The position numbers were made by a program, and so were the translations under genes. 64,000 nt of DNA from Heteronotia binoei (taxonomy: Eukaryota), in NCBI RefSeq assembly GCF_032191835.1, contig NC_083239.1:56854001-56918000 (forward strand), written 5' to 3'. Under the pieces are notes generated by a model. It saw only the letters and a list, made by a program, of their open reading frames with translations, did no database searches and was not told the origin of the DNA. This document shows positions 12,304 to 62,754 of the stretch, in pieces; within the stretch, counting starts at the first letter, position 1, and each line of letters starts with the position of its first letter.

Positions 12304-15300
12304 ATGGTGGAGGGGAAGGAGGCGGCGGCCAGGGGCATCAGCGACGAGGAGGCCGCGCAGTACGACCGCCAGATCCGCCTCTGGGGGCTGGAGGCGCAGA
12401 AGCGGTGAGGGGGCCGGGGGGGGGGCAGGGGCGGTTGGCTGGCGGGGGCTCCCCTCCCCCTCGAGGCCAGGGGGCGGGGCTTGGGCAGGGGGCGGGGCTT
12501 GGGCGTGAGGGAGGGGCGGGGCGGTTGGCTGGCGGGCTGACTGTAAGTAAGTAAGTAAGTAAAATTTTATTTATATCCCGCCCTCCCCCGCCAGTGCAGG
12601 CTCAGGGCGGCTAACAATATCCATAAGCGAACAATACAGTAGATAAAAACATTAAATTAACATTATTTAAAACCAGTCTCCCCTCCCCCTCGAGGCCAGG
12701 GGGCGGGGCTTGGCCAGGGGGCGGGGCTTGGGCGTGAGGGAGGGGCGGGGCGGTTGGCTGCCGGGGGCTCCCCCCCTCGAGGCCAGGGGGCGGGGCTTGG
12801 GCGTGAGGGAGGGGCGGGTGGTTGGCTGGCGGGCTGACTGGGGGCTCCCCTCCCCCTCGAGGGCTGGGGGCGGGGCTGAGGGAGGGGGCGGGGCCGTGGG
12901 CTGGGGGGCTGCCTCCCGCGGGCCCCGCTGACGTGGGCTCTCCTCTCGTCTCCTCTCCCCTCCTCAGGCTGCGGGCGTCGCGGGTGCTGCTGGTGGGCCT
13001 GCGCGGGCTGGGCGCGGAAGTGGCCAAGAACCTCATCCTGGCGGGCGTGAAGGCGCTCACCCTCCTGGACCCCCAGCAGGTAGGCCCCCCCCCCCATCCC
13101 AGCACTGCGGCCTCGAGGGAAGGAGGCAGCTGTGCCACGCAGGGCCTTCTCCGCAGAAAAGCTGCGGCTCCCTCCCTAGAGCAACACGCCGCCCTCTGGC
13201 TCAGGCCGTCTGCACAGCCACTTCTGCTGAGAGAGGAGGGGCAGCTGGTTGACGTATCAGATATTATGGTGTGTAATCATTACAAGCTTGTGCAAGACAT
13301 CCAGCAACAACGCCAAAAGTAGGACATACATTTCCCCCCCTTGGATTGAAAGATATCATTCAATCACATGAACCTATGAAGCTGCCTTCTACTGATTCAC
13401 ACCCTCCTTCAGTCAGTCTTGTCTGCTCAGACTGGCAGCGGCTCTCCAGGGTCTCATGCCTACTTGCCTGGACCCTTTTCAGCTGGAGATGCTGGGGATT
13501 GAACCTGGACCTTCTAATTACCAAGCAGATGCTCTACCACAGAGCCACTGTCCCTTCCCAAAGAGTTGTGAACCTATGAAGCTGCCTTCTACTGAATCAG
13601 ACCCCCCCTGGGTCCATCAAAGTCAGTCTTGTCCACTAAGACTGGCAGCAGCTCTCCAGGGTCTCAAGCGGAGGTTTTTCACGCCTATTTGCCTGGACCG
13701 TTTTTTGGAGATGCCGAGGATTGAACCTGGGACCTTCTGCTTACCAAGCAGATGCTCTACCACTGAGCCACAGCCCCATTCATGGCTCTCCAGGGTCTCA
13801 AGCTGAGGTTTTTCATGCCTACTTGCCTGGACCCTTTTGAGTTGGAGATGCTGGGGATTGAACCTGGGACCTTCTGCTTACCAAGCAGTTGCTCTACCAC
13901 TGAGCCACTGTCCCTTCCCAAAGAGTTGTGAACCTATGAAGCTGCCTTCTACTGAATCAGACCCCCCTTGGTCCATCAAAGTCAGTATTGTCTACTCAGA
14001 CTGGCTGCAGCTCTCCAGGGTCTCATGCCTACTTGCCTGGACCCTTTTCAGTTGGAGATGCCAGGGATTGAACCTGGGACCTTCTGCTTACCAAGCAGAT
14101 GCTCTACCACAGAGCCACTGTCCCTTCCCAAAGAGTTGTGAACCTATGAAGCTGCCTTCTACTGAATCAGACCCCCCTTGGTCCATCAAAGTCAGTATTG
14201 TCTACTCAGACTGGCTGCAGCTCTCCAGGGTCTCATGCCTACTTGCCTGGACCCTTTTCAGTTGGAGATGCCAGGGATTGAACCTGGGACCTTCTGCTTA
14301 CCAAGCAGATGCTCTACCACTGAGCCACCATCCCTCCCCCAAATCTTTTGTTTGGCCAATTTTTTTTTAAATTATTATTTCAGGCCATGGCTATTAAGAT
14401 ACTCTTAAAACCACTTAAGTCTTGGCAACAGATACTCTTGAATTATTTATCGATGAATAAACAACATAGACTCCAAGCTTTCACATTATACTGGCACTCA
14501 CATAAAGGTGGTATGCATTTTCTAGATATCATAGATTATTATAATACAACACATTTGTCAAAAATTATTATAATGTTAAGAGCAGACAACGCCTGATTGG
14601 ATAACTTCTCAATGAATATATTTCTCCTCATTCTATTAAAGAAACAATTTGGCAACAATCAGCTGGGAGACTCAGCACACTAAATTCTAACAAGTTTTTA
14701 ACACCCATATTGAATGTCTGGGATGAACTAAGGGCATTTCTAGATCTTCCTACTACACAGGGCAGCAGTGGTACCCTCCTGGCATAAATATTAAAAAAAT
14801 AAGGATCTACGTAGAGCAGGATTGAAAAGATTTGACAGACAAAAACAAATTTATGGATAAAACTATTTTGGAGACAGAAATGCAAACTTCAATTAGTTGG
14901 TATAGATATCATCAGTTAACCCATCATTTATACTCAGCTATCTATATGATATCCAGGAAACACCTCTTAACAGAATTAAAACTTATAATAAAGCAAGCAG
15001 ACTCCTGTGCTAAAGGCATCATTTCAAAATTATATCAACTTTTAGAGCTAAGGAAGCAAGACAAACCTCTTCTATCAACAACAATGACAAAAAGAATGTA
15101 AAATTTCATTAAATTCTGCTTGTTGGGACAAAATTTGGAATTCATTTGAAAAGACTACAAGTATTACATGAATTAAATCCCAGACTTTAAAACTTATGTC
15201 TTTTTGGTATTCTACACCATGACAGTTATCGTATGTTACTAGAGGAACTCCACCACTTTGTTGGGAAAACTGTTCGCAGATTGGTACATATTCTCATCAT

Positions 15301-18300
15301 TGGTTATGGTGCCCAAAGATTTATTCATATTGGACGCAGATATTGTAAATAATTAAAACCATAACAGGGATACCTTTGTCTTTAATTCCTGAAATTATTT
15401 TATTGAACTATAGAGAAAAAGTTCAGGTGTTACCTGTAATGAATAGTTTTATTGATCTTTGTGGCTAAACTAGCAAGAGCTCAAAAATGGAAACTAGATG
15501 CAGCCCCTAATTTAACATGGCATTCATATATAATGGCTAAATTTATGAACGTCTAAAATAGAGCTAGAAACAGAAAATAAAAACTTTATTACAATATGGT
15601 ACCCAGTTTTAGATTATCTTCAAACGCAAAAGGAAATTCCTGATACTCTCTCAGTTTTATATCTGGTAATAATAATATGATTTTATTGAGCAATATTTTG
15701 ACTTATGTAAGGTTGTGAATTTTATTGTTTAAATTATTATTAGTCGTACAAATATTGTGTAAAAATCTTGACGGTCCTAATTTTTATGTTTAAGTTTAGA
15801 TGTTTACGTATGATTTTATTTAATTTTGCTTATCTTTTCTTTGTTATATAACAAGATTTAAAATTCAGTAAACTATATTTGAAAAGAGAGAGAGAGAGAG
15901 GTATAGGTAACACTTCCTGTTGCCGGATCTTAGAATCACAGAGTTGGAAGGGGCTCTAGAGGCCATCTAGTCCAGCCCCCTGCTCGGTGCAGGATCAGTT
16001 TAGAGCAGAGGCGTTGAGCTCATTTGTTGCAAGGACAGGATCGGACTTAAATGTCACTTGTTGGGTAAGCCCATGTGTGTCGTGAATGTAGTGCCAGGTG
16101 CTGGAGACTTGCAGCTGGTGAGCTTGGAGTGGGCGTGTCCTCCTTGCAAGGCCCCGTGGGCTGGGCTGGGGTGGTGCAGAGGAAAACCTGCGTGAGTGGA
16201 CTGGAGAGCCAACAGTGCAGCGCTGGGCAGACCCCACAATGCCTGGTGGGAGGGGCAAACCCTTTACCCAGCCTGCTGTCAATGCTGTGAGCCTGGGCCC
16301 CAGGGTAAAATAAAATCATGAAGTGGGTGGGTGTTGCGAGCTCTCTGCTGCCCTGAGCAGCCATGGGAAGGGTCTGGGAAGGTAGGCTGAACTCACATCC
16401 CCCCCCCTGCCTGCAGAAGTGGGGAGGGGGTGGTGGCCCAGGGGCCAGGCCACGTGGGGTGGCGGGGCTGAGCCCAGCAAAGGCTAATAAGCTGGAGACA
16501 CCTGAGTGGCCGTGGTTGCCTGTTCCCAAGGCCGCCGGGCAGTCTGTGGTGGGGCGAGACTGAAGGTTCAAGCCAGACTTTGTCAGCAAGCCACTCCACC
16601 CAATGTGTTGGCAGCTGCCCCAGATGGAAGGCTAGTGGCTTGTCTGATAGGGAAGTGACCACCACACGCTCAAGGCTGTGCATGTGGCAGAGGCCCAAGC
16701 CACACAGTGACCAGTAGAGGCAGAGAGCAGCCCCCGTGAGGCAACTGAAGGCCACCGGGGGAGGAAGGTCTGACTGCCGAGCTGCTTGCTCAGGGGCAGG
16801 GCGAGGCTCCCGATGTGTGGAAGAAACTGCCAAAGCCCTGCTGGCAGATGGCGTGTCTGTGGCAGCACTGGCCACCAGCAGGCCCCAGCAGAGGATCTTC
16901 TGCAAGCCTGATCCCCGTAGCACCCCTGGAGCTGCATCCTCACCTTGGAACCCTGAGTCACCTGGACTGCGGCTTCAGAGGCTCCCAACTCACTGGCGAG
17001 GCTGCCACTGAAGCGAAGGCGTCCTGAACGACCACTGCAGACGAGCATGTTCCGCTGGCCCGGCCCACTTCATAAGAACATAAGAGAGGCCATGTTGGGT
17101 CAGGCCAATGGCCCCTCCAGTCCAACACTGTATCNNNNNNNNNNNNNNNNNNNNNNNNNNNNNNNNNNNNNNNNNNNNNNNNNNNNNNNNNNNNNNNNNN
17201 NNNNNNNNNNNNNNNNNNNNNNNNNNNNNNNNNNNNNNNNNNNNNNNNNNNNNNNNNNNNNNNNNNNNNNNNNNNNNNNNNNNNNNNNNNNNNNNNNNCT
17301 GATGGACCTCTGCTCCATATTTTTATCTAACCCCCTCTTGAAGCTGGCTATGCTTGTAGCTGCCACCACCTCCTGTGGCAGTGAATTCCACATGTTAATC
17401 ACCCTTTGGGTGAAGAAGTACCTCCTTTTATCCGTTCTAACCTGACTGCTCAGCTATTTCATTGAATGCCCACGAGTTCTTGTATTGTGAGAAAGGGAGA
17501 AAAGTACTTCTTTCTCTATGTTCTCCATCCCATGCATAATCTTGTAAACCTCTATCATTTCACCCCGCAGTCGACGTTTCTCCAAGCTAAAGAGCCCCAA
17601 GCATTTTAACCTTTCTTCATAGGGAAAGTGTTCCAAACCTGTAATCATTCTAGTTGCCCTTTTCTGCACTTTTTCCAATGCTATAATATCCTTTTTGAGG
17701 TGCGGTGACCAGAATCGCACACAGTATTCCAAATGAGACCACACCGATTTATACAGGGGCATTATGATACTGGCTGATTTGTTTTCAATTCCCTTCCTAA
17801 TAATACCCAGCATGGCGTTGGCCTTTTTTATTGCAATCACACGCTGTCTTGACATTTTTAGTGAGTTATCTACCATGACCCCAAGATCTCTCTCTTGGTC
17901 AGTCTCTGCCAGTTCACACCCCATCAACTTGTATTTGCAGCTGGTATTCTTGGCCCCAATGTGCATTACTTTGCACTTGGCCACATTGAACCTCATCTGC
18001 CACGTTGACGCGCACTCACCCAGACTCAACAGATCCCTTTGGAGTTCCTCACAAACTTCTCTGGTTCTTACCACCCGGAACAATTTAGTGTCATCCGCAA
18101 ACTTGGCCACTTCACTGCTTACTCTCAACTCCAAATCATTAAAGAGCATGGGACCCAGTACTGAGCCCTGCGGCACTTCACTGCTTACGGTCCTCCACTG
18201 CGAAGACTGCCCATTTATACTCACTCTCTGCTTCCTATTAATTAGCCAGTTTTTGATCCACAAGAGGACCTGTCCTTTTACTCCATGACTCTCAAGCTTA

Positions 18301-21300
18301 CTAAGGAGCCTTTGATGAGGAGCTTTATCAAAAGCTTTCTGGAAGTCAAGGTAAACAATATCTATCAGGTCTCCTTTGTCCACATGTTTGTTCACCCCCT
18401 CAAAGAAATGTAACAGGTTAGTGAGGCAAGATCTTCCCTTACAGAACCCATGCTGAGTCTTCCTCAATAACTCGTGTTCATCAATGTGCCTACTCATTCT
18501 GTCCTTGAAAATGGTTTCTACCAACTTTCCCGGTATTGAAGTCAGACTGACTGGCCTGTAGTTACCCGGATCTCCTCTGGAACCCTTTTTAAAGATGGGG
18601 GTGACATTTGCTACCTTCCAGTCCTCAGGGACGGAGGCAGATTTCAATGAAAGATTACATATTTTTGTCAGGAAATCCACAACTTCACCTTTGAGTTCTT
18701 TCAGAACTCTTGGATGTATGCCATCCAGACCTGGTGACTTATTAGTTTTTAATTCGTCCATCAGTTGTAGGACCTCCTCTCTTGTCACCTCAATCTGGCT
18801 CAGGTCTTTCAACACCCCTTCCAATAGAAGTGGTTCCAGAGCAGGCAAACACTTCTCATCTTCCACAGTGAAGACGGAGGCAAAAAATTCATTTAGCTTC
18901 TCAGCCATTTCCCTATCCTCCTTCAGTAATCCTTTGACCCCTTGGTCATCCAAGGGCCCCACTGCCTCCCTGGCTGGTTTCCTGCTTCTAATATATTTGA
19001 AGAAATTTTTATTGTTGGGCTTTATGTTTTTTGCAATATGCTCCTCATAGTCCCTTTTTGCCTGCCTGATCACAGTCTTGCATTTGATTTGCCACTGCCT
19101 GTGTTCCCTTTTACTAATCTCACTTGGACTAGCTCTCCACCACTTAAAGGAGTCCTCCTTACCTTTTACAGCTTCCATTACTTTGTTTGTTAACCATGCA
19201 GGCCTTCTTTTATACCTGTTTGTACCTTTCCTAACTTGTGGTATATATTTTATCTGAGCTTCTAGGATTGTATTTTTAAATAGCCTCCAATATTTTTAAA
19301 CTTCCTCCCACCCCAGCAGTCTCCTCTTCCCTCTTTCACAGCAGTTGCTCGCTCGTGGGGAGGATAGGAGCCCTGAATGGGCCTTGTGTTTGACAGCCAT
19401 CTCCTAGAGCATCCCTGGCAAGTGTTCGTCCAGCCGCTGCTTGTAGACTGCCGGCGAAGGGGAGCTCATTGCCTCCCTGGGCAGCCAATTCCACTGCTCG
19501 ACTGTTCTTACTGCACCCCGCCCCCCAGTATCCACCCACTAACTTTCTGCCTGTAATTTAAACCCATTACTGTGAGTTCCTGGATCCACCATGCATGGTC
19601 CGGGGAGAGAGTCCTTCCAAAGGAAATGCGCGTTGGGCTCTCAGGCCACAAGGTGGCGCTTCCCGGTTGCTGGGGCTGCTAGCGGGCAGCAGGGGAGGGA
19701 GGGAGGCTTTGCAAGGAATCCAGAGGGGAGGGCTGGGAAGTCCTGCTGGTGCCCATGTCCCCTCCAAGGCCACTCCGCAGGGCCGGCATTTCTGGTCCTG
19801 AAGCAGCACAGAGGCATTTGTTTGCCCTCTTCTGGCAGGGCTCTGGTTCCTCATGTGGCTGCATAATGAGCAAGGCAAGCCTTATGGAACTCTCCCTGAT
19901 GAATTGCCTGAACTTTTGCAAGTCACGCTGCTAATAGAGGCACAGGAGCCCCTGCCGGAGAATAGGCAGACTCTCTAGAGAGCTCTCTTTGCTTTTTGCT
20001 GGTAACCTCAACAGGCGTGGAAACCACTGAAGCGCTGCCTATTGTGGGCTCGTTTCTGGCCTTTGGAGGGGTCTCCCTCTGCCCAGCGCAGTTGTGGGAG
20101 GATGGCATGCCTGCCCTGAGGCTATGGGGAAGCAGCGCCTGGCTCTGGAGAGCAGCAGCCCCAGGCACATCTCTGGCAGCTGAAGCCAGCCTCTTCGGCA
20201 CGAGTCTTCCCTCGACTTCTGCAACAGCGTGTTGGCTGACAGACAGGAAGGACGCCCTCAGTGCTGCCTCTCTTCAACGGAATGCTGCTCTGCGTGTTGC
20301 TTTTCTGTTTAACCAAGAAGCAATCATACTGCTGTGGTGGTGCCATGTATCCTGGAGGTCTTCCAGAGCTGGCTAACCTGATGTCTGGAATCTCTCCCAC
20401 TGCTGAAGTGTTACTGGGAGCTTTGCCGTTTCCAAGGAGAGGAGGAGGCCTTGCTTGCTGATCTCTGCGCTCTTCCTCAGGTGTCACCAGAAGATACCCA
20501 GACGCAGTTCCTGATCCCTTTGGGCTCCGTGGGCAAGAACAGGGCCGAAGCTTCCCTGGAGCGGGCTCGGGACCTGAACCCCATGGTTGACGTGAAAGCA
20601 GACCAGGAGGACGTGGGGCAGAAACCGGAGGCCTTCTTCACCCGCTTTGATGTGGTGGGTCCAGGGAGGAAGGTGGGGGGTGCCTGGCTCAGGCTGCAAG
20701 GGGGGTGGGGGCATGCCGGCTTCTATGAACCCCTCCAGCATTTGGGTGTATTTCTGGCCTTGTGGTCCCACCTTTCCCTGCTCTCAGAGTCACTTGCATC
20801 TTGTTAAAAGACACAGTCTAATGTAAATCCAGCAATTCAGGACTGCAAAGGTAAACACCTTTTATAGCTTTAAAGCTCCCTTTAATTGATTTGTGTATTA
20901 AAACGTTTACATCTCTCCTTTCCTCATGGTTCAGGACGGTCCTTCAGTCTTTACAAAAGCTGAATAGCAAAGTTGCCAGCTTCCAGGGAGCCAATGCTAG
21001 GAGGCTAGTGCCCCCCTCCCCAAAAGTCCCCTTGTTCTCTTGGTTCCAGGCTGAATGTGATCTGGAGGCAGGCAGGCTCCTTTGGAGAGAAGCCCCCAGC
21101 CCCAAAATGACATAGCAGCACCTCAGATTGCAAGACCCACCTGTTGCCTGTCCTGGATATAAGCAAACCAAAATAAGGATCATGCATTGGAGGGATTGAG
21201 AACAAGCTGAAGCTTCCGTGAGCACCAGCCTCTGAACAAACACTCAGACTTCTTAAAGATAGAGATCAAATATTTCGTTGAGATTTCCTGTGCAAATAAC

Positions 21301-24300
21301 ATGAGAAATCTCTCATCGCAAGTACTTTAGCTGTGCATTCTTTACCTTCTATCACTTTTTTGTATGGAAGCAGAAGTTCTTCTGCAAAAAATGTATAAAA
21401 TTCCTCCGGAAAGCCATCCAGACCAGGAGCTTTATTATTTTTCTGTATTCTCATCATATTGACAATTTCTTGGATTGTTATCATTGCAGCTAGGGTCTCT
21501 CTTAAATCCCCGTGTAAAGTTTCAATAGTCTGTAGGTAGCCTACAGGTACTTCTTAGTCTTATATTATACTTGAAGTGGAAAGCTGCAGAAAACATTGTG
21601 AAGCAAGGAGAAGAAGTACCAACTTGTTGCTATAAAAGGTGTGTCCGTGGAAGATTGAATTTCGGAAGTTGTTGAAGATCTCGCTACAAATAATGCTGTG
21701 GACTGGGATTCACCTATGAAAGATTGGGTATCTATGGACTATTGACATTTTACATGGGATTCTCTGTTCTAGCTTAAGAACATAAGAGAAGCCATGTTAA
21801 ATCAGGCCAATGGCCCATCCAGTCCAACACTCTGTGTCACACAGTGGTTATATACACACACACACACTCTGTGGCTAATAGCCACTGATGGACCTCTGCT
21901 CCATATTTTTATCTAAACCCCTCTTGAAGGTGGCCATGCTTGTGGCTGCCACCACCTCCTGTGGCAGTGAATTCCACATGTTCATCACTCTTTGGGTGAA
22001 GAAGTACTTCCTTTTATCCGTTTTAACCTGTCTGCTCAGCAATTTCATCGAATGCCCACGAGTTCTTGTATTGTGAGAAAGGGAGAAAAGTACTTCTTTC
22101 TCTACTTTCTCCATCCCATGCATTATCTTGTAAACCTCTATCATGTCACCCCGCAGTCGACGTTTCTCCAAGCTAAAGAGTCCCAAGCGTTTCAACCTTT
22201 CTTCATAGGGAAAGTGTTCCAGCCCTTTAATCATTCTAGTTGCCCTTTTCTGGACTTTCTCCAATGCTATAAAATCCTTTTTGAGGTGTGGCGACCAGAA
22301 CTGCACACAGTACTCCAAATGAGACTGCACCATCGATTTATACAGGGGCATTATGATACTGGCTGATTTGTTTTCAATTCCCTTCCTAATAATTCCCAGC
22401 ATGGCGTTGGCCTTTGTTATTGCAAACGCACACTGTCTTGACATTTTCAGTGAGTTATCTACCACGACCCCAAGATCTCTCTCTTGGTCAGTCTCTGCCA
22501 GTTCACACCCCATCAACTTGTATTTGTAGCTGGGATTCTTGGCCCCAATGTGCATTACTTTGCACTTGGCCACATTGAACCGCATCTGTTTATTCCATGT
22601 TCATCTGAAAGTACTTGTAATGAAAGGTACTTCATGTGATTTGCATAGGAAATCTCAATGAAATACTTGATCTCTATCTTGTAGGTAGCCTCTGGTTGTT
22701 TGGAGGCTGGTGTCCTGGATATGGCAGGGGAGGGGTGAACGGCTCCTGTGGCGGGGGGGGGGGGGGGGGGCTTGAGCCCAGATGGTGCCCACCAGCTCTG
22801 CCATAGAGACAGAAGCCGTGGAGAGGGAGCACCAGCCGAGATGGTGGGCAATGGGTGATCTTGTGAATTTGGCTCTGAACCAAAGTTCTCCATCTGATGG
22901 CCTGGTGGTGGCGGGGGGGGGGGGGGTTCAGTCCAGCACCTGCTCTGGGCATCACCCTGGGGGTGTTGGTCTTTCTCTCTCCAGGTCTGTCTGACATGCT
23001 GCTCCCAGGAAGTCCTGATGAAAGTGGACCAAATATGCCACAAGAACGGCATCAAATTCTTTGCAGGCGATGTCTTTGGCTACCATGGCTATATGTTTGC
23101 TGACTTGGGTGAACATGAGTTTGTGGAGTGAGTCTGGGGTTGGGAAGCAATGCTGGGGCCGGGGGGGGGGGGAGGGAGGAGGTTCCTGAGAAGGTCCACT
23201 ATGTAGCAGCTTCCACCTGTGGGGCTTCTGGGTCCCCAAGGGGGGGCCTTTGCTTTGAGTCCACTTGTGCTCTTCTCTGTGGAAGGAGCCATCCTGCCTG
23301 CCTGGGTCTCCATGGCCCTTCTGAAGAGGGTCCTACTCCCCCACCCCTGCCTCCCTCGCTCCCAGGAGAGGAGGAGAGAGTTGTGTGTTCATCTGTCTCT
23401 GTGCCTGCAGAGAGAAGGCCAAGCCAGCCAAAGCCAGCCAGCCTGTGGAGGATGGGCCTGATGCGAAGAAGGCCAAGCTGGACTTCATGGAGACCACCAT
23501 GGTGAAGAAGGTGGGTGGAGAGCCCCCCCCCGGGGTCCCTGGAGGAGGACTTGGCTTTTTGCCACTTGTGCTGGAGAAGTTGGCGGGCTGCTATTTTGGA
23601 AGTGCCCTCCCTCCATGCAGCTGCCTGTCATTCTCTGGGCTTCGTCCAAAGAATGCTGTGGGGCTGAGCCCTCCCGTGGCTTCCAGGCACGCCTGCCCTT
23701 GTCCCAGGGGGTTCATTGGGAATGCCTCTCCTTCTTTGTCCCTCTGCTTTGTCCCTCCCTTTCCCTTTGAGAGTCTGGTTGTTGCCAAGGAATGCTGCAT
23801 GGCTCCTCTCACAGGAAATGGCCTGGCTGTAGTGGAGTGATGGTGGCCTTGTGGTGGGCAGTTGCAGTCCCCTGTTGCCCTCCAAGGGAAGGGAGAGCAG
23901 GGCCTGCGCCTGCAGCGGCCTCCTTGAAGGGGTGGGAGAGGAGGAGGCCCTTTGGCAGCTGGCAGGGGAGTTCTCTGCCCAGCAGGTCTGGAGGCTGCCA
24001 CTGGGGTAGGGAGTAGGGGTGTGCAGAAAAAAAAAATCGGTATTACACGGATTCGGAAGTGTACAGGGAAAAAAAATTCGGAATCCCCGTATACTGCTGA
24101 ATACCACATTCAGAATAGCCGCATATGCGGTAGATGCGCGGCTATTTCCGAATATACGGTCCTATTATACCCTATGGGCCATTGAAATCAATGGCAGATA
24201 GGGTATATTTGAAGCCGCCTGGAGGGGAGGTGGTTTGAGGGAGAGCCCCCAAATTTGCAGGGGACTCTCCCCTCCAACCCCCCCAAGTCCCAAAAAGATT

Positions 24301-29733: not shown

Positions 29734-30092
29734 GAAGCCCAATACCCCCCCCCCCCCCCTTCTATACACAAGTCCATCTACATCGGCAGCCCCGCCCCCT
29801 CTCCCATGGCTGGCCTTTCTTGCTGGAGGAAGAGCTGCGGCGGCGGGGCTGCCCCGTCTGTACAGGCTCAAGGAACAGGATTCTCGTAGTGCTAAAACTT
29901 CAGGCACGGCTGGCCGGAGCGCCTCCTCTCGCGGGGGGGGGGGGGGGCCGCCCTGGGCCGAGGAGGCGGCGGTAGCAGCAGCGGCGGCGGCCCCGAGTCC
30001 TTGCCTTCCCGCGGCGTGTCCAGCAGGCAAGTCCGGGCGGGCGGATTGCCCCCTCCCCTGGCCAGCAGGAGGCAGGAGCGCGGGGGGGGGGG

Positions 30093-31172
30093 CTAGTTGG
30101 GGCCGAGGCCCAGGCGGCCCCCCTCCGCCGGCAGGTTGTAGAAGACGCCCAGCAGCTGCAGCAGGAAGTGGCAGAAGTGCTCCCAGCCGGGCCTCTGCGG
30201 AGAGAAGCAGGCCGGGTGAGGGAGGGAGAGCCCAACTTGCTGCCCCCTCTGGCTGGGCCGGCCTCCCATCCCCGCCGCGGGCTATTTATAGGTGCTGCGC
30301 CAGCCGCCGCGCCCTGCCCAGCCCAGCCCAGCCGGGAGCACGCCAGAGGGAGGCTGCAGGGGCGCCCCTCTCCCGAGGAGGGGGGGGGGGCGTGGAGGCT
30401 GACCTGTTGCTGCTGCTGGCGCTCTCGGTGGAAGCGGTCTCCGAGGAGGCGCAGGCGGGCGCCGAGGGTCTGCTCCAGGCTGGGCGGGAGGCTCGGCGGG
30501 AGGCGGGCGGGGGGCTCCGGCGGGGGGCTGCTCTCCAGGGCCGCCGGGCTCTCTAGGAAGCAAGGAGGCCAGAAGCGCGCTCAGGCCAGGCGGGCAGGTG
30601 CAGAGCAGCGAGGGGGGAGGGAGCGGCGCTCGTGGGCACCGGAGCATTTCAGGACGCGGCTCCTGGTCCCCCGCCCCGCCCCGGCACCCGGGGAGGGCGA
30701 AAAGTGCGCATTCGGGGGAAGGGCAGCGGGGGACGCCTGGATGGACGCCCCCCTCCCTCCATCGCCCGGCGGCACCTGCCCAGGCCGGGGAAGATGCCGC
30801 GGGAAGGCGCGGCTCTGGCACGCGGCCCCCTCCCCCGGCGGCGAAGGAGAGGTCGCGGGGAGGTCCCGCCAGACGGAGCCCCCTCCTCTTACCGTGGGGC
30901 GGCGGTGCGGGGCGCGTGCGGGGGGGCTGGGCGCCCCGCATGCAGCGGTAGAGGGCGCGGGGCGGCAGCGGGCCGGCGCCGGCGGGGCAGAGGGCGCAGT
31001 TCAGGCCGGGCGGCAGCAGGGCCAGCGTGGCCGTTGTCGCCGTCGGGCTCCGGCAGAGGGGGGGCGGCAGGGCCAGCGTCCCGCCCAGAGCGAAGCCCCC
31101 GCGGCTCCCGGGCGCAGCGGCAGCAGCAGCGGTCGGCTCAGCGCGGCTCCCGTCCGGCAGAGGTCTGGCCAT
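30093..31172 (-). CDS. BBC3: BCL2-binding component 3 / PUMA (BH3-only); coding exons 31172-30893, 30552-30404, 30194-30093 (176 aa)
   Basis: Kozak gagcgccATGG; N-terminus MARPLPDGSRAEP (human MARARQEGSSPEP); phases 1/0; BH3 LEQTLGARLRLLGDRFH; C-terminus ...GLGPN* (human ...EMEPN*); position between SAE1 and CCDC9. Confidence 0.88.
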
Positions 31173-31295
31173 GGCGCTCGCGCAGATCTGCCCAGGAAAA
31201 AGAGGAGAAGGCGGCGGTCACTCACCTCCAGCGGCTCCCGCGGGCGCCCCCGACCGCCCTCTGCCTTGGGGGCGCCCCGCCCCCGCCCCCTGTTT

Positions 31296-49769: not shown

Positions 49770-50004
49770 TCAAGAGTACTAAAAGAGCTTGCGGGTGTAA
49801 TTTCTGAGAATTTTGGAGAACAGGTGAGGTGCTGGAAGACGAGGTGGGCAAATGTAGTCCCCATCTTCAAGAAGGGGGGAAAGGGGATTTCAGTAAGGCT
49901 TTTGATAAGGTCCCACATAATATTCTTGTTGACAAGTTAAGAAATGTAGTTTGACTCCTATGACTGTTAGGTGGATCTGTAACTGGTTGACAGATTGCAC
50001 CCAA
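49770..50004 (+). mobile_element. Degenerate CR1 RT fragment
   Basis: Relic motifs RVLKELA, ANVVPIFKKG, KAFDKVPHNILVDKL across frameshifts. Confidence 0.65.
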
Positions 50005-50505
50005 AGAGCCAGTTTAGTGTAGTGGTGAAGTGCGCAGACTCTTATCTGGGAGAACCAGGTTTGATTCCCCACTCCTCCACTTGAACCTGCTGGAATGGCC
50101 TTGGGTCAGCCAGAGCTCTCTTATCTGGGAGAACCAGGTTTGATTCCCCACTCCTCCACTTGCACCTGCTGGAATGGCCTTGGGTCAGCCAGAGCTCTCT
50201 TCTCTGGGAGAACCGGGTTTGATTCCCCACTCCTCCACTTGCAGCTGCTGGAATGGCCTCGGGTCAACCATAGCTCTTTTATCTGGGAGAACCGGGTTTG
50301 ATTCCCCACTCCTGCACTTGCAGCTGCTGGAATGGCCTTGGGTCAGCCATAGCTCTTTTATCTGGGAGAACTGGTGTGATTCCCCACTCCTCCACTTGCA
50401 CCTGCTGGAATGGCCTCGGGTCAGCCAGAGTTCTCTTATCTGGGAGAACCAGGTTTGATTCCCCACTCCTCCACTTGCAGCTGCTGGAATGGCCTCGGGT
50501 CAGCC
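50005..50505 (+). repeat. SINE head followed by six tandem 79-bp SINE-internal units
   Basis: Head agagccagtttagtgtagtggtgaag; unit starts near 50041, 50120, 50199, 50278, 50357 and 50435. Confidence 0.9.
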
Positions 50506-50809: not shown

Positions 50810-51422
50810 CAGGGCTGCCAAACTCATTTGTTGTGAGGGCTGGATCTGACACAAAGGAGACTTGTCAGGCCGGCCCACGAGTATAATGAAATGTAATGGC
50901 AGGTAGTGGAGATATAAGCCTTATAAAGGATAGAAACACAAATATTTTTTTAAATTAAAACTTAAAATAAAGCATGCTTAAAAGAATAGCACTCTTGCAA
51001 TATTTTTTCACAATGCGATAACTGACCCGTCTTCCTTGGAATGGTTGCGTCAGCATCTGAAGACTGCCTGTGCTGTACCAGTCTTGAGTAGGCTGTTCAG
51101 GTGTTGTTTGGGCGTTTCTCTAAGTTGCAAAGCTACGTTTGATTTAATGGCATTCATTACAGAAATCTCATGGTCAGTGCTTTGAGCTTAAGACATGGGA
51201 AAACAAAATGGCTGGGCATTGTGAGCTTTCGTACATAAGTTGTTTCATGTGTTGGTCAGCCAGTGGAGAAAACAGGCTTTGCTCTGTAACTCCTGCACAA
51301 TTGAGCAAGCCTGGCAAAGCAAGCTGTAATGCACAAAGAAGCGAGAGAGAGAAGGAAGCAAATGACAGTGAGTTGTTTGCCGGCCTGATGGGGGCCCTTT
51401 GGGGTCACTTTTGACACCCCTG
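50810..51422. mobile_element. hAT MITE, third family member
   Basis: TIRs CAGGGCTGCCAAAC / TTTTGACACCCCTG; both termini align with the 5793-6383 copy in reverse; TSD not clean. Confidence 0.7.
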
Positions 51423-51504: not shown

Positions 51505-53098
51505 ATTCAGTTCTGGGCACCACAATTTAAGAAGCATATAGACAAGCTGGAATGTGTCCAGAGGAGGGCAACAAAGATGGTGAGGAGGCCTCTGAGGAAA
51601 GGCTGAAGGAGCTGGGCATGTCTAGCCTGGAGAGGAGGCAGCTGAGAGGTGATCCAATCACCATCTTCAAGGACTTGAAGGGCTGTCCTAGAGAGGATAG
51701 TGCAGGCAGCCACAAGCACAGCCAGCTTCAAGAGGGGATTGGATAAAAATATGGAGCAGAGGTCCATCAGTGGCTATTAGCCACAGCATATTATTGGAAC
51801 TGGCTGGGGCAGTGATGTTCTGTATTCTTGGTGCTTGGGAGGGGGGGGGGGCAAGGTGGAAGGGCTTCTAGACCCACTTGTGAACCTCCTGATGGCACCT
51901 GGGTTTTGTTTTGTTTTCTTTTTTTTTTTTATTTTTATTTTTTTTTTTTTAAGTTTTAAAGTTTTGTTACTAAAAATCAACTACAAACATAACAAAATGC
52001 TAACACACTAATAACATGAAACATATAACATAAAAAACAACACAATACACAACACAATATACATACTACTCCCTACCACATCATCCCCTACCAACTACCA
52101 ACCACCCACACTGGAGAGGGATAGGGGGGTTAAACATAAAAGCATTACACAGTTCAATGCTTCATCTATACATTATCCTGATATACTCTGTTTTTATATG
52201 TCTTATATCATATAACATATGTCATATATCATATATCAAAACCTATCATATATCATAACCTCTGTTTTTAACCCAGTCATATACAGGGTCCCATTCCTCC
52301 CGACATTTCTGCACATTACCACCTCTTAATCGGGTGGTCATCAAATCTGCTTCCGCCGTTTCAAAAAGTTTAGATATAAATTCTTCTCTGTTAGGAGTTC
52401 TGTCCTCCTTCCAGTACTTAGCATATAAGATTCTGGCAATTGTAACTATGTACAACACTAATTTCAACTTGGTCGCTGGTAAATTTTGTCTGCAAATGTT
52501 TATGAGATACAGTTCCGGAACATGCTTTACTTGTATTTTCAGAATTTTTTGAATCCAGATATTGACTTGTGTCCAATATTTCCTGGCCTTTTTACAATGC
52601 CACCATATATGGAACAGAGAACCTTTGACTTCGGTACATTTCCAACATTTATTGGAGTAAGAGGGATATATTTTTGCCAATCTGTCTGGAGTGAGATACC
52701 ATCTATAAACCATTTTATACACATTTTCTTTGAGGTCTGCTGGTTTTATTAACTTCATATTCTGCTTCCATAGCTTCTCCCACTCTTCCAGATCTATATT
52801 GTAACCAAAGTCTTTCAACCATCTAATCCAGGCTTCTTTCACCACTTCATCCTGCATCTTGGCTTGGAGCAGCCATTCATATACCTTGGCAATTAATTTT
52901 TGTTTAGACTCCAAAATCAAATCTAGATCAGAGTCGGAATTCCCAAAACCTATTTCTTTATCTTTTCGAAATCTCGATCTCACTTGACATTGTAGCCACC
53001 AAGATAGCTTTTGTTTTGTTTTCTGGCCCCTGTGTGACCCAGAGTGTTGGACTGGATGGACCATTGGCCTGATTCAACATGACTTCTCTTATGTTCTT
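51505..53098 (+). mobile_element. Old CR1 3' fragment split by an L1 insertion
   Basis: QFWAPQFKKHIDKLECVQRRATKMV relic; the 3'UTR resumes at 53025 and ends tctcttatgttcttag. Confidence 0.8.
51920..53008 (-). mobile_element. 5'-truncated L1 LINE (ORF2 C-terminus with CCHC knuckle, 3'UTR, poly(A))
   Basis: Open frame to 52246 with CWKCTEVKGSLFHIWWHC; T-rich tail 51920-51960; perfect 16-bp TSD TTTTGTTTTGTTTTCT (51904-51919, 53009-53024). Confidence 0.9.
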
Positions 53099-53888
53099 AG
53101 TTGCTTTCTGTGGCCCCAGAAGGTCGGACCAGACAGAACCAACAGGTGGAAATTGTCAAGACTTTTTGACTGAACAGTGAGCCAGACTTTCTGATGATGA
53201 GAGCAGTTCCTCAGTGGAAGAGGCTTCCTTGGGAGGTGGTGGGAACAGGCTCAGGGCCACCTGGCAGCAATGCTGATCCTGGGAACTTTGGCAGAAGAGG
53301 GGGGGGGAGGGAGGGCAGGAAGGGTTGCAGCTGTGCTTGGTCCTCGGGCCCTTCCTGACCCACCCACCCGTTTCTCTCCAGGCTAGCTTGGCCAGGCATC
53401 CTGGAGGGGTTGCTGGGCGGTCTTCTGCAGTGGAGCAGGGTATGTTTGAATGCCCTGCATTGTGCAGGGGGTTGGACCAGATGAGGCGGGAAGTCCCTTC
53501 CAAGTCTCTGATTCTGTGGAGCTGTGTCCAGAAGGGGTGTAAATTGTGCTTCTGGTCCCTCTGGGGCGGGAAGAAGGCTCTCACCCACCCCGCCCCCGGA
53601 GGAAGGTTGTGGAGGAGGGACCAGGGGCTGGTAGCCAGAGGCCTCCTCCAGCTAGGCGCAGAGACCCTCACCCTGGGACTCCCTTCTCCCGGCGGGAGGC
53701 AAGCTCGGGAAGAGCGCCAGGGCCTCTCTGCCGCGGTGTCCTCCCTTAGGAGACAAGGATGCCCGCCGGGCTGCAGGGCCCCTGGGTGGGGTGGGGGGGT
53801 CTCATCCATCCCGCAGGGCTGCACGGAGGACGCGGGCTCTGCAGCCAGCTCCGGCAGCGCCCTATTTGGGAGGGGACGGGCTGGATGA

Positions 53889-54281
<393 letters not shown>

Positions 54282-54954
54282 CGCCTGGGCCCTGCGTTCG
54301 AATCCTGCCCGGCCCGAAGCAGTCTGACGGCGCTGCCGGAATCCTCAATAAACGGCCGGGCCCGCGCCAATGGCTCCTCTGCCGCCGCCTTGTGTTCCTT
54401 GCGCGCCGGGATGCGGGGGGCTGGCGGGCCTCGGCGTGGGCCAGGAAAGGGCGCTGCGGCCTTCTGCGCCTGGCCTTGACAGCGACGAGCCCTTTTCTCT
54501 TCCGCGGGTGGGCAGCTGCCGCCCCCCGGGCCCTGCGCGATCCAGCTGAGCGGCGGGGGCGGGGCCTCGGCTGGGGGCGGGGCGGGCGGAGAGCTGTCCC
54601 AGCGGCACAGAAGGCGAAGGCGCTCCTGGGGAGGGCACTAGCCCCCCGCCGCCTCCCCCCTTCCGGAGAGAGCCCAGCGGGGGCCTGGGCGGAGGGCAGG
54701 GGAGGGGAGGGGTCCTGGGCGGAGGGAGCGCTCTGCAAGCCCCCGAAGGGCAGCCGCTGCCAGGAGCACAGGTGAGGCGGGGAGGCACCGTGCCCCCTTC
54801 CTACCGGCAGCGTCGGGGAGAGGAGGGCAGCGCCCCCTCGGGAGGAACCCGCCCCTCCCGCGCCCTGCTTCGGACACCCGGAGGGAGGCAGGGAAATGCT
54901 GCTGGAGCCAGCCAGCCAGGGGAAGGGCGCCTTCGGTGCAGCCAGAAGAGGGGG

Positions 54955-56602
54955 GATGGCCACAAGGACACGCAGCTTCAACAGGGCATGGAGGAGGCCA
55001 CCAGCCCAGCTCACCCGAGGGGAACTGCCGCCTTCAGAGGCACTACAGTCCTGAAGCTCAGAGCCAGGAGGCAACATGAGGCCTCGGCCTCTCTGCCCTG
55101 TTGTTGGCGCTCCAGAGGAACTGGCTGGCCACTGTGTGAGACAGGAGGCTGGACCTGATGGACCCTCTCTGGTCTGATGCAGCAGGGCTCTTCTGAGGTT
55201 CTTCTCAGGGGAAGGCCTCGGCCTCTGTGCCCTGTTGCAGGTCCTCCAGAGGAACTGGCTGGCCACTGTGTGAGACAGAAGGCTGGACTAGATGGACGCT
55301 CCCTGGTCTGACCCAGCAGGGCTCTTCTGATGTTCTTCTCAGGGGAAGGCCTCGGCCTCTCTGCCCTGTTGTTGGCCCTCCAGAGAAACTGGGTGGCCCC
55401 TGTGTGAGGCAGGAGGCTGGACTAGATGGACCCTCCCTGGTCTGACCCAGCAGGGCTCTTCTGGTGTTCTTTTCAGGGGAAGGCCTCTCTGCCCTGTTGT
55501 TGTCCCTCCAGAGGAACTGGTCGGCCACTGTGTGAGACAGGAGGCTGGATTAGATGGACCCTCCCTGGTCTGACCCAGCAGGGCTCTTCTGATGTTCTTC
55601 TCAGGGGAAGGCCTCGGCCTCTCTGCCCTGTTGTTGGCCCTCCAGAGGAACTGGTTGGCCTCCATGTGAGACAGGAGGCTGGACTAGATGGACCCTGAAT
55701 GGGCTTATCCAGCAGGGCTCTTCTGAGGTTCTTCTCAGGGGAAGGCCTCAGCCTCTCTGCCCTGTTGTTGGCCCTCCAGAGGAACTGGGTGGCCACTGTG
55801 TGAGACAGGAGGCTGGACTAGATGGACGCTCCCTGGTCTGACCCAGCAGGGCTCTTCTGATGTTCTTCTCAGGGGAAGGCCTCGGCCTCTCTGCCCTGTT
55901 GGTGGCCCTCCAGAGGAACTGGCTGGCCACTGTGTGAGACAGGAGGCTGGACTAGATGGACCCTCCCTGGTCTCACTAAGCAGGGCTCTTCTGGTGTTCT
56001 TTTCAGGGGAAGGCCTCTCTGCCCTGTTGTTGGCCCTCCAGAGGAACTGGTCGGCCCCTGTGTGAGACAGGAGGCTGGATTAGATGGACCCTCCCTGGTC
56101 TGACCCAGCAGGGCTCTTCTGATGTTCTTCTCAGGGGAAGGCCTCGGCCTCTCTGCCCTGTTGTTGGCCCTCCAGAGGAACTGGCTGGCCACTGTGTGAG
56201 ACAGGAGGCTGGATTAGATGGACCCTCCCTGGTCTGACCCAGCAGGGCTCTTCTGATGTTCTTCTCAGGGGAAGGCCTCGGCCTCTCTGCCCTGTTGTTG
56301 GCCCTCCAGAGGAACTGGCTGGCCACTGTGTGAGACAGGAGGCTGGATTAGATGGACCCTCCCTGGTCTGACCCAGCAGGGCTCTTCTGATGTTCTTCTC
56401 AGGGGAAGGCCTCGGCCTCTCTGCCCTGTTGTTAGCCTTCCAGAGGAACTGGTCGGCCCCTGTGTGAGACAGGAGGCTGGATTAGATGGACCCTCCCTGG
56501 TCTGATCCAGCAGGGCTCTTCTGATGTTCTTCTCAGGGGAAGGCCTCGGCCTCTCTGCCCTGTTGTTAGCCTTCTAGAGGAACTGGTCGGCCACTGTGTG
56601 AG
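54955..56602 (+). repeat. CR1 3' fragment extended by about 12 tandem 134-bp copies of its terminus
   Basis: Unique CR1 3'UTR at 54955-55075, then units spaced 134/128 bp ending cagcagggctcttctgatgttctt. A 128-bp variant unit recurs 530 bp apart (about 55461 and 55991). Confidence 0.92.
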
Positions 56603-57840
56603 CAGGTCCATAGGTCCTGGGGGTCCTGGGGGTTCAGCCCCACCAATCAAACCCTTGCCTGCTTTCTGGCCCCTGCAATCAGTCCCCGCAGGTGGGTGGG
56701 TGGGGGCCCTCTCCGCCCTCAGTGGAGGGTGAGGCTGGGACTCTGTCTTCTGCTCCAGAACTCTCTCTTCCCTCTCCCTTTGCCCAGCCATGTCCCCCCC
56801 CCCCCTTCTTCCCCAGCCAGGGCGGGTTTGTGAGCATGGCCCCCTCCCCATGCAGAGGCATGCTGGCTCACTGCCCTTTGCAAAACACAGATGAAAACCA
56901 AACCGAGTCGCTGAGGTTTTGCAGAAAAGCCTCCCCTCAGTTCCAAATGAACCAGAGTTGCCGCGCATCTTACAATGGCCTCGCTTGGTATTAGAGACGA
57001 GCCCCTTGAAAGATGAACAGAACTTGGGTCGAGGCTGGAGAGCGGGCTCGGCATCCTTATGGCTTCCTCACGAGCAGGCGTCGGGGCACCGGGGGCGACG
57101 GGCTTCTGGGGGGTGCAGCCCCTGCCGGCTCCCCCCACAATTGGCAACCGGGCTCTGGGTGTGAGGCAGGAGGCGGCCGGAGGAGAGGGACCCCCTTCCG
57201 TGCTCTGGCCCAGCAGCCGGGGCTCTTCCCACGCGGACGGGGCGGGGGGACTGGAGGCTGCCCAGCGCAGCGAGGCAAACCAGGGGAGGAGGCTCCACGA
57301 ACTCTCGGCAGGGGAAGGAAACGGGCCGCGGAGGAGGCAATTGCGACACTGCGGGGGGGGGGGGGGCGGCCCAAGGGACGCCCAGAGGACACTCCCCGGG
57401 ACCCCAGCGCTTGCAGGAGTCGGGGAGGGGCTGAGGGGGCTGTAGGATCCCGGCTGGCAGAGGGATGCCCAGTAGGATGGGGGAGGGGTCGCCCTTCTGC
57501 CCCCTCCGGGAACTACCACCCCCCCCGCCTCCCCCGCCCATGGCCCCCAGGTGGAGAGCGGTCCTGGGCCAAGGACGCCAGTTCAGGGCTGAGGAGGCTG
57601 CGGGCAGGGCAGGGCGGGGCGAGGGTGGTGGTGGGGGGGCTCTGTTGGCAGCTGGCCCCTCCACTGGGGAGCAGGTCCCGGCGTCTCCCCCCCCCCCCCG
57701 CCTCCCGACACAGCTGGGCAGGACCCGCCGGCAGCCCAAGAAGAGCAGGCGCCCCCTGCGGGAACCCGGAGGGCGAGCGAGCGGCGAGGGGGGGCATCCG
57801 GGGTAGGTTCGGGGAGTTTCCTCTCCCCCCCCCTCGAGGG

Positions 57841-60019: not shown

Positions 60020-61998
60020 GAAGCAGCAGAAGATATTGGAGTTATATCCCGCCCTCCACTCCGAAGAGTCTCAGAGCGGCTCACAATCTCCTTTCCCTTC
60101 CTCCCCCACAACAGACACCCTGTGAGGTAGATGAAGATATTGGATTTATATCCCGCCCTCCACTCCGAAGAGTCTCAGAGCGGCTTACAATCTCCTTTAT
60201 CTTCCTCCCCCACAACAGACACCCTGTGAGGTGGGTGGGGCTGAGAGGGCTCTCACAGCAGCTGCCCTTTCAGGGACAACCTCTGCCAGAGCTATGGCTG
60301 ACCCAAGGCCATTCCAGGAGATGCAAGTGGAGGAGCAGGGAATCAAACCCAGTTCTCCCAGATAAGAGAGCTATGGCTGACCCAAGGCCATTCCAGCAGC
60401 TGCAAGTGGAGGAGTGGGGAATCCAACCCGGTTCTCCCAGATAAGAGAGCTCTGGCTGACCCAAGGCCATTCCAGCAGCTGCAAGTGGAGGAGTGGGGAA
60501 TCCAACCCGGTTCTCCCAGATAAGAGAGCTCTGGCTGACCCAAGGCCATTCCAGCAGCTGCAAGTGGAGGAGTGGGGAATCCAACCCGGTTCTCCCAGAT
60601 AAGAGAGCTCTGGCTGACCCAAGGCCATTCCAGCAGCTGCAAGAGGAGGAGTGGGGAATCCAACCCGGTTCTCCCAGATAAGAGAGCTCTGGCTGACCCA
60701 AGGCCATTCCAGCAGCTGCAAGTGGAGGAGTGGGGAATCCAACCCGGTTCTCCCAGAGAAGAGAGCTCTGGCTGACCCAAGGCCCTTCCAGCAGGTGCAA
60801 GTGGAGGAGTGGGGAATCCAACCCGGTTCTCCCAGAGAAGAGAGCTCTGGCTGACCCAAGGCCCTTCCAGCAGGTGCAAGTGGAGGAGTGGGGAATCCAA
60901 CCCGGTTCTCCCAGAGAAGAGAGCTATGGCTGACCCAAGGCCATTCCAGCAGGTGCAAGTGGAGGAGTGGGGAATCAAACCCGGTTCTCCCAGATAAGAG
61001 AGCTATGACTGACCCAAAGCCATTCCAGCAGCTGCAAGTGGAGGAGTGGGGAATCCAACCCGGTTCTCCCAGAGAAGAGAGCTCTGGCTGACCCAAGGCC
61101 CTTCCAGCAGGTGCAAGTGGAGGAGTGGGGAATCCAACCCGGTTCTCCCAGAGAAGAGAGCTCTGGCTGACCCAAGGCCCTTCCAGCAGGTGCAAGTGGA
61201 GGAGTGGGGAATCCAACCCGGTTCTCCCAGAGAAGAGAGCTCTGGCTGACCCAAGGCCCTTCCAGCAGGTGCAAGTGGAGGAGTGGGGAATCCAACCCGG
61301 TTCTCCCAGAGAAGAGAGCTCTGGCTGACCCAAGGCCCTTCCAGCAGGTGCAAGTGGAGGAGTGGGGAATCCAACCCGGTTCTCCCAGAGAAGAGAGCTC
61401 TGGCTGACCCAAGGCCCTTCCAGCAGGTGCAAGTGGAGGAGTGGGGAATCCAACCCGGTTCTCCCAGAGAAGAGAGCTCTGGCTGACCCAAGGCCCTTCC
61501 AGCAGGTGCAAGTGGAGGAGTGGGGAATCCAACCCGGTTCTCCCAGAGAAGAGAGCTCTGGCTGACCCAAGGCCCTTCCAGCAGGTGCAAGTGGAGGAGT
61601 GGGGAATCCAACCCGGTTCTCCCAGATAAGAGCGCTCTGGCTGACCCAAGGCCCTTCCAGCAGGTGCAAGTGGAGGAGTGGGGAATCCAACCCGGTTCTC
61701 CCAGATAAGAGAGCTCTGGCTGACCCAAGGCTATTCCAGCAGCTGCAAGCGGAGGAGTGGGGAATCAAACCCGGTTCTCCCAGGTAAGAGAGCTCTGGCT
61801 GACCCAAGGCCATTCCAGCAGCTGCAAGTGGAGGAGGGGGGAATCAGTTCTCCCAGATAAGAGAGCTCTGGCTGACCCACGGCCATTCCAGCAGGTGCAA
61901 GTGGCGGAGTGGGGAATCAAACCCGGTTCTCCCAGATAAGAGAGCTATGGCTGACCCAAGGCCATTCCAGCAGCTGCAAGTGGAGGAGTGGGGAATCA
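60020..61998 (-). repeat. SINE with a duplicated 104-bp tail and about 21 tandem 79-bp internal units
   Basis: Unit agagctctggctgacccaaggccattccagcagctgcaagtggaggagtggggaatccaacccggttctcccagataag; the ORF track shows 79-nt periodicity (60414, 60493, 60572 and onward). Confidence 0.95.
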
Positions 61999-62000
61999 AA

Positions 62001-62754
62001 GAAGAAGACGACTGCAGATTTATACCCCGCCCTTCTCTCTGAATCAGAGACTCAGAGTGGCTCACAATCTCCTATATCTTCTCCTCCCACAACAGACACC
62101 CTGTGAGGTGGGTGGGGCTGAGAGGGCTCTCCCAGCAGCTGCCCTTTCAAGGACAACCTCTGCCAGGGCTATGGCTGACCCAAGGCCCTTCCAGCAGGTG
62201 CAAGTGGAGGAGTGGGGAATCAAACCCGGTTCTCCCAGATAAGAGAGCTCTGGCTGCCCCAAGGCCATTCCAGCAGCTGCAAGTGGAGGAGTGGGGAATC
62301 CAACCCGGTTCTCCCAGAGAAGAGAGCTCTGGCTGCCCCAAGGCCATTCCAGCAGCTGCAAATGGAGGAGTGGGGAATCCAACCCGGTTCTCCCAGAGAA
62401 GAGAGCTCTGGCTGACCCAAGGCCATTCCAGCAGCTGCAAGTGGAGGAGTGGGGAATCAAACCCGGTTCTCCCAGATAAGAGAGCTCTGGCTGACCCAAG
62501 GCCATTCCAGCAGCTGCAAGTGGAGGAGTGGGGAATCCAACCCGGTTCTCCCAGAGAAGAGAGCTCTGGCTGACCCAAGGCCATTCCAGCAGCTGCAAGT
62601 GGAGGAGTGGGGAATCAAACTCGGTTCTCCCAGATAAGAGAGCTCTGGCTGACCCAAGGCCATTCCAGCAGCTGCAAGTGGAGGAGTGGGGAATCCAACC
62701 CGGTTCTCCCAGATAAGAGTCCGCACACTTAACCACTACACCAAAGTGGCTCTC
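62001..62754 (-). repeat. Full-length SINE with about 7 tandem 79-bp internal units
   Basis: (GAA)n tail at 62001, body, the array, then the tRNA-like head ending at ...aaccactacaccaaagtggctctc. Confidence 0.92.

Follow-up and report, generated by a model that had tools for sequence, protein, structure and literature searches.

Retroposon-derived tandem arrays in a GC-rich stretch

The window of the Heteronotia binoei genome that was analyzed here (64,000 nt of NC_083239.1) carries seven or eight tandem arrays within a 50-kb GC-rich stretch, and the units of these arrays are pieces of short interspersed elements (SINEs) and of CR1, a family of long interspersed elements (LINEs). Arrays were detected with Tandem Repeats Finder (TRF), and their units were mapped within the window by nhmmer, alignment, and self-BLAST; all copy numbers come from one assembly. 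Approximately 14.4 kb is retroposon-derived tandem repeat, a share of 23% for the whole window and of 29% for the span from 13362 to 62754, and the TRF scores range from 380 to more than 10,000, well above chance level. The window contains two runs of N, at 17135-17298 and 63648-63792, neither of which overlaps any array.

An original prediction, made from the sequence alone, had placed several of these arrays within 50 kb, and TRF recovered all of them and added an eighth, array F. Array A (13369-14342, minus strand) has a TRF period of 210/137, and array B (34307-42481, minus strand) comprises about 75 units, mostly of 102-109 bp, plus units of 181 bp. The plus strand carries array C (47454-48075; 104 bp × 6, with 98% identity between units), array D (50039-50505; 79 bp × 6), and array E (55079-56606; 134 bp × 11.5), while arrays F (60029-60232; 104 bp × 2), G1 (60288-62000; 79 bp × 22), and G2 (62165-62719; 79 bp × 7) lie on the minus strand. 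The derivation of the units from retroposons, which had also been proposed, is borne out by a match to the published consensus of the SINE Squam3B and by CR1 copies within the window. The prediction further counted four unrelated source segments, which is an overstatement: B and E represent the same region of the CR1 3' untranslated region (UTR), and the 79-mers and 104-mers belong to one SINE.

Internal repeats of the SINE Squam3B

The 79-mers and 104-mers are internal repeats within single copies of one SINE family and not free-standing arrays. We identify this family as Squam3B, since it agrees segment by segment with the published consensus (compared by eye with the supplement of PMC7983390) at the start of the head, in the box-B region, from 'tctctcagcccc' through 'cctcacag', and in the tail region with its (CTT)n. 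The architecture is likewise that of Squam3B, with a tRNA-derived head, a CORE-like body, an L2-derived 3' region, and a (CTT)n tail. Squam3 has been described with a (CTT)n tail, and few target-site duplications were reported for Squam3 and CR1 (PMC7983390); the SINE in our window shows both this tail and the scarcity of target-site duplications.

Unit registers were mapped on an unduplicated reference copy (63091-63372, minus strand), which was recognized by sequence and nhmmer. Read from 63372 to 63091, the 79-mer covers positions 53-131 and includes box B, the body duplication covers positions 128-238, and the tail unit covers positions 164-270. In copy C (47189-48075, plus strand), the head is followed by a single 79-bp segment, by the 109-bp duplication of the body (47298-47453), and by six 104-bp tail units. 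Copy D (50005-50505, plus strand), which is inserted beside a CR1 reverse transcriptase (RT) fragment at 49850-49990, has the head followed by six 79-bp units and is 3'-truncated mid-unit. Copy G1 (60029-62000, minus strand) is 5'-truncated and begins mid-unit, continuing through 22 of the 79-bp units and the body into two 104-bp tail units, the latter being array F. The abutting copy G2 (62001-62754, minus strand) is complete, with a tRNA-like head, seven 79-bp units, the body, a single tail of the other subtype, and (CTT)n. One further 5'-truncated copy (7615-7915, minus strand; sequence, self-BLAST, nhmmer) combines the same 109-bp body-duplication junction as C with the other tail subtype. 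Directly upstream of the head of G2 lies a 14-nt SINE-head fragment (62755-62768, minus strand), and immediately past the tail of G2 begins the incomplete first unit of G1; G2 may lie inside the head of G1, and about 40 nt of G1 would then be missing.

Arrays of at least six units are borne by four of the six Squam3B insertions in the window, which looks like local enrichment. If a SINE-derived satellite (sSat) is defined, following Vassetzky et al. (2023), by more than four tandem SINE-derived units that lie no more than 100 bp apart, copies C (6), D (6), G1 (22), and G2 (7) all qualify; F has 2 units, and A consists of five whole SINEs. Longer terminal units are present as well, at both SINE termini in G2, upstream in C (head and body), and downstream in G1 (body and tail). 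Folded as RNA, the 104-nt tail unit at 47558-47661 (plus strand) reaches -39.4 kcal/mol (z = -2.6 versus shuffles). A local inverted duplication that would relate C and D on the plus strand to F and G on the minus strand was considered and rejected, as self-BLAST found no common flanks and the internal structures differ.

Array A is built from a different SINE, of about 200 bp, tRNA-derived, and with a CR1-like 3' end, which is possibly Squam2. Five copies stand head to tail, as marked by five minus-strand Rfam tRNA hits of 33-60 bits that are spaced 210, 210, 137, and 223 bp apart; three of the junctions have the same 8- to 10-nt spacer, and copy 3 is 3'-truncated. These five heads are the sole Rfam hits in the window at the gathering threshold, the Squam3 heads falling below it.

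CR1 copies and the arrays at their 3' ends

Several single CR1 copies in the window make it possible to read the junctions of arrays B and E. One lies at 17073-19178 (minus strand), with a 574-amino-acid RT open reading frame (ORF) at 17454-19178 (Pfam RVT_1, 6.6e-29) and its terminus at 17073-17133. The assembly gap at 17135-17298 falls within the 3'UTR of this copy; its right flank is the C terminus of ORF2 and its left flank the terminal UTR, correctly ordered and on one strand, and the two are therefore colinear parts of one element. The terminus used for reading both arrays is defined by a single CR1 3' end at 21775-22600 (minus strand), in which the ORF2 C terminus, the stop codon, and a short 3'UTR are followed to an intact terminus (22000 to 21775). 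This copy is 94% identical to 17299-17999 over 704 bp (self-BLAST), which, together with the uninterrupted 574-amino-acid ORF, suggests that the family has recently been active in this gecko. We take the clade to be CR1 on the strength of the motifs FADDTKL and, at the C terminus, FKRGLD, and not of a clade-specific profile; a search of the ESM Atlas with the LINE RT returned generic RVT_1 clusters only and resolved no clade. Two plus-strand copies complete the reference set, namely an ORF2 C terminus with the 5' part of a long 3'UTR at 51650-51906 (sequence, alignment, nhmmer) and a short, 5'-truncated single terminus at 53018-53100 (sequence, nhmmer). A T-rich tract (51904-51965) interrupts the former at 51906, so that this copy lacks a terminus. 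An octamer-like tail is visible at CR1 termini.

The units of both arrays match the CR1 3'UTR (nhmmer E = 1e-5 to 1e-12 for B and 1e-4 to 1e-6 for E), and nhmmer and alignment place them at the same 3'UTR positions of two subfamilies, on opposite strands. The unit of array B begins about 25 nt past the ORF2 stop and ends at the CR1 terminus; comparison with the copy at 51650-51906 shows that a 181-nt unit corresponds to the whole UTR except for the first ~25 nt, and the common unit of 102-109 bp differs from such units by an internal deletion of about 76 nt. Undeleted 181-bp units are found at 42481-42306 and 42199-42019. The first unit, running from 42481 to 42306, starts where all other units do and has no longer 5' parent; with no CR1 extension upstream, B is therefore a concatemer of one whole 5'-truncated insert. 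Toward its edges the array holds longer or more decayed units. Its decayed 3' end adjoins a block at 30000-34300 with 74-76% GC and a CpG observed/expected ratio of 0.6-0.73, which is probably one or more CpG islands. Instability of array B driven by G-quadruplexes was rejected as an idea, because the 8 kb hold 0-3 canonical motifs, a lower number than elsewhere in the window.

Array E represents the 3' terminus of a second, more distant CR1 subfamily; a dispersed relative is present at 10156 to 10023. The parent of E, a CR1 3' end at 54930-55212 (plus strand), extends about 150 nt upstream of the array into ORF2 C-terminal homology (54930-55079) and continues through the 3'UTR to the first terminus; the 134-bp units that follow include two 128-bp variants, and the array ends mid-unit, without a complete tail. 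A longer parent copy preceding the array had been predicted in three cases. This is true of C, where the SINE starts at 47189, and of E, where CR1 starts at about 54930, but not of B, where the apparent parent is a 181-nt unit without the 76-nt internal deletion. A conserved hairpin for recognition by RT was considered for the CR1 units; as RNA, these units fold no better than shuffles (z = -0.6 to +0.95).

Stepwise growth of the arrays at the DNA level

The order of variants within the arrays records how they grew. In G1, eight neighboring 79-bp units are identical, and a variant map shows that each of the 79-mer arrays has private variants. In array E, a four-unit block of 530 bp (55213-55742), marked by a 6-bp deletion and linked substitutions, is duplicated at 55743-56272. 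Within array B, units resemble each other less the farther apart they lie (Mantel permutation p <= 0.0005): identity is 0.888 at lag 2 and 0.856 for units more than 32 positions apart. It is also higher at lag 2 than at lag 1 (0.871), a two-unit periodicity; the closest relative of a unit mostly stands 2, 4, or 5 units from it, and some identical pairs occur despite the 87% mean. Block duplication, the lag-2 signal, the decay with distance, and the identical runs show that growth proceeded stepwise at the DNA level, by unequal exchange or block duplication and not in one step. Consistent with this, units within the SINE arrays are 92-98% identical, compared to 80-94% between the SINE copies of the window.

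These observations uphold the part of the original prediction in which unequal exchange followed an initial seeding, and they go against its idea of a conversion process acting across the locus. Units are on average 98% identical in C, 95% in G, 92% in D, and 87% in B, and this spread indicates arrays of different ages and argues against a single locus-wide episode. As the generator of the satellites, the prediction had named repeated re-priming or template jumping of reverse transcription at retroposon 3' ends. Such a process fits seeds that are anchored at a terminus, but the positional structure excludes it as a one-step origin of the arrays: the star-like similarity expected of a single event of reiterative reverse transcription is not what we see, while a two-unit seed made by RT is still compatible.

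Origin of the seed duplications

The junctions between units constrain how the first duplication came about. In B, C/F, and E, the end of the unit lies a few nucleotides at most from the terminus that single copies define, with 0-5 nt before the next unit and no flanking DNA. Four of the six junction types in the window lie at an element 3' terminus; three join a tail to an internal position or to the start of the insert, and the fourth joins whole SINEs through a spacer. The remaining two junction types, found in the 79-mer and in the 109-bp duplication of the body, join internal positions to each other, so that they did not come from re-priming at the 3' end and need another origin. The claim that arrays sit at retroposon 3' ends accordingly applies to the boundaries of A, B, C/F, and E and fails for the 79-mers, which are internal to SINEs. 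The terminus-anchored junctions would be unlikely products of random DNA duplication and fit a seed linked to insertion. Two successive insertions, an RT template jump, and a break at a microsatellite-like tail are all compatible with them, and the junctions cannot separate these three.

For the SINE arrays, the same junctions recur at different places. C and F have exactly the same 104-mer junction but different flanks and upstream structure; D, G1, and G2 all show one and the same 79-mer junction, with a 4-nt CTCT microhomology; and C agrees exactly with the copy running from 7915 to 7615 in the junction of the body duplication. Because these junctions are common to separate insertions, the duplications that served as seeds probably came with source SINEs instead of being made at this locus, and were then expanded in place.

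Our results lead us to favor, with fair but not high confidence, the view that each array is a minisatellite grown in place from a seed duplication that a retroposon supplied. The seed would be a small duplication, and subsequent growth would occur by unequal exchange or slippage. For Squam3B, three seeds would be involved, namely the 79-bp B-box, the 109-bp body, and the 104-bp tail segments, and these would have been carried by source SINE variants and spread by retrotransposition, with each insertion expanding independently. For the two CR1 subfamilies (B and E) and the SINE of array A, the seed would be a tail-to-internal or tail-to-head dimer formed at or around insertion, made either by two successive insertions or by an RT template jump. 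The clustering of the arrays is most likely due to the GC-rich, recombination-active character of the region, in a genome in which such arrays are common, and does not point to a conversion process specific to the locus.

Several points weigh against this view. Each of the junctions that speak for seed inheritance is represented in only two or three copies, and every pairing of the three SINE duplications with the two distinct tail subtypes is present. Such a four-gamete pattern implies either mosaic or recombinant SINEs or a repeated origin at the same junctions, and it weakens a simple subfamily story. Neither the B nor the E junction was seen at any other locus, which leaves the CR1 arrays with no evidence of inheritance. 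Arrays E and D end mid-unit, their 3' boundaries being blurred by later deletions, and copy numbers and the timing of expansion depend on a single assembly.

Among the alternatives, the one that keeps most of its force, unlikely as we consider it, is that the LINE RT repeatedly re-primes on, or jumps to, the 3' end of its template during target-primed reverse transcription, producing copies with multiple tails on which unequal exchange acts later. The unit boundaries of A, B, C/F, and E at the retroposon 3' terminus speak for it, as do the unit of B, which is a whole 5'-truncated insert, and that of A, which is a whole SINE plus a short spacer, both of which are expected of end-to-end jumping; the mosaic combinations of SINE duplications and tail subtypes can also be counted in its favor. 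End-to-end template jumping is a known property of the R2 RT. Jumping would, however, yield variable truncation points, whereas unit lengths are uniform, and the block duplication, two-unit periodicity, distance decay, and identical runs described above mean that most units are later, DNA-level products. The internal-to-internal 79-mer and body duplication find no place in this scheme, and array E has no complete terminal tail. Two further features do not discriminate: junction microhomology is only 1-4 nt and is compatible with every model, and the succession of a longer copy and shorter units is uninformative because any tail-to-internal dimer of the form a-b-b expands to a-b-b-b. We regard as rather more doubtful a bolder version, in which the L2- and CR1-type RTs of this gecko would often return from an internal or 5' position on the template to a 3' end and would routinely release multi-tail or concatemeric retrocopies (whole SINEs, whole truncated UTRs, and tail dimers). 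Such copies would then give rise to most minisatellites of GC-rich, recombination-active regions, across several families.

Equally doubtful is a purely DNA-level origin that includes the seeds themselves, which would arise through replication slippage, through microhomology-mediated repair, or when short repeats on either side exchange with each other, with the microsatellite-like tails serving as fragile sites that fix one boundary. The 4-nt CTCT microhomology at the 79-mer junction agrees with this idea, internal duplications need no RT, and slippage between flanking repeats of 5-10 bp is the usual first step of a minisatellite according to reviews (PMC6947457). Under random duplication, however, it is unlikely that the boundary would coincide with the retroposon terminus in several independent families and that flanking DNA would be missing, and inheritance explains identical junctions in separate insertions more simply than repeated slippage does. 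Mis-assembly of the arrays or their copy numbers is very improbable, since the two N gaps in the window and the eight identical consecutive units of G1, whose number could be wrong, are outweighed by the many distinct, ordered variants (87% mean identity in B and an ordered four-unit block in E), by clean unique flanks and sensible element boundaries, and by the publication of the same kinds of arrays from other gecko assemblies (PMC10702118).

Relation to known retroposon-derived satellites

SINE-derived satellites are known in geckos, as the original prediction had stated. Vassetzky et al. (2023; PMC10702118) described satellites derived from Squam1, Squam2, and Squam3 in 56 squamate genomes, geckos and snakes included, and reported longer terminal units, alternating subvariants, units that are more homogeneous than SINE copies, and a subtelomeric preference. 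Their sSat3 resembles what we find in its units, which are parts of Squam3, in the longer terminal unit that reaches the SINE terminus, and in the presence of more than four units per locus; its units are also more alike than SINE copies, and its subvariants alternate (PMC10702118). The gecko variants of sSat3 are diverse, one of them combining the central and 3'-terminal parts, and a box-B unit occurs in snakes (PMC10702118). That snake unit is 67 nt long, while gecko units measure about 107-150 nt (PMC10702118), and the 79-bp unit seen here may be among the variants of sSat3. Our window differs in holding four such loci within 16 kb, which was not reported for sSat3 in PMC10702118.

The dimers that we propose as CR1 seeds likewise have a precedent. 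McGurk and Barbash (2018; PMC5932611) found tail-to-internal tandems to be a regular transposition product of non-long-terminal-repeat (non-LTR) elements, and, as here, the 3' end is joined to an internal 5'-truncation point in a form that unequal exchange can expand. Their material was Drosophila elements such as jockey and R1, mostly as dimers (PMC5932611), whereas ours consists of gecko CR1 and L2-dependent elements with 6 to about 75 units. The statement in the original prediction that CR1-terminus-derived arrays were not known does not hold for CR1-derived arrays in general, as the passages on chicken in PMC9659126 and PMC6947457 list the HinfI repeat and the Cen2, Cen3, Cen4, Cen7, and Cen11 satellites as CR1-derived. 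According to these passages, the chicken satellites are, like arrays B and E, tandem repeats of CR1 3'UTR and adjacent sequence, but with longer units that include parts of ORF2 or with a centromeric location, in contrast to the units here, which comprise no more than the final 105-181 nt of the UTR and lie in a region rich in genes and GC. A cetacean satellite from the L1 3'UTR is a further LINE-UTR satellite covered by reviews (PMC9659126, PMC6947457, PMC12628747).

Within the literature searched, we found no description of CR1-UTR minisatellites in squamates. SVA is a composite retroposon with an internal variable number tandem repeat (VNTR), the copy number of which varies between insertions. 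It shares with the Squam3B copies an internal tandem repeat on a non-autonomous retroposon, but its VNTR belongs to the active element, whereas the 22-unit arrays are probably too long, and their variants too locus-specific, to have been retrotransposed whole. The arrays in our window are further examples of described retroposon-derived satellites, and they show no new mechanism of reverse transcription.

How a dispersed repeat is converted into a tandem array is a long-standing question of satellite biology. Five retroposon segments at different stages stand here side by side, with as few as 2 and as many as about 75 units and with unit identities of 98% down to 87%. Single copies in the same window allow an exact reading of the junctions, which makes the arrays a convenient natural series for seed-and-expand models. 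Our findings also extend what has been published for squamates from SINE-derived satellites to CR1 3'UTRs.

Other features of the window

Outside the arrays, the GC-rich ORFs of the window gave no Pfam match besides the CR1 RT. The CpG-rich stretch at 12400-12910 holds GC-box-like tandem repeats of 18-24 bp, and an 88-bp pair that is 98% identical occupies 12449-12536 and 12678-12765, at a spacing of 229 bp. Near the end of the window, the gap at 63648-63792 interrupts about 540 bp of purine-rich, (AG)n-like low-complexity sequence (63455-63995). An unclassified interspersed repeat of about 550 bp is present at 5791-6340, 42564-43091 (inverted), and 50810-51398, in copies that are 72-80% identical; it has an internal duplication of its own of about 105 bp (5912-5996 versus 6017-6103), and one of its copies adjoins the upstream end of array B.

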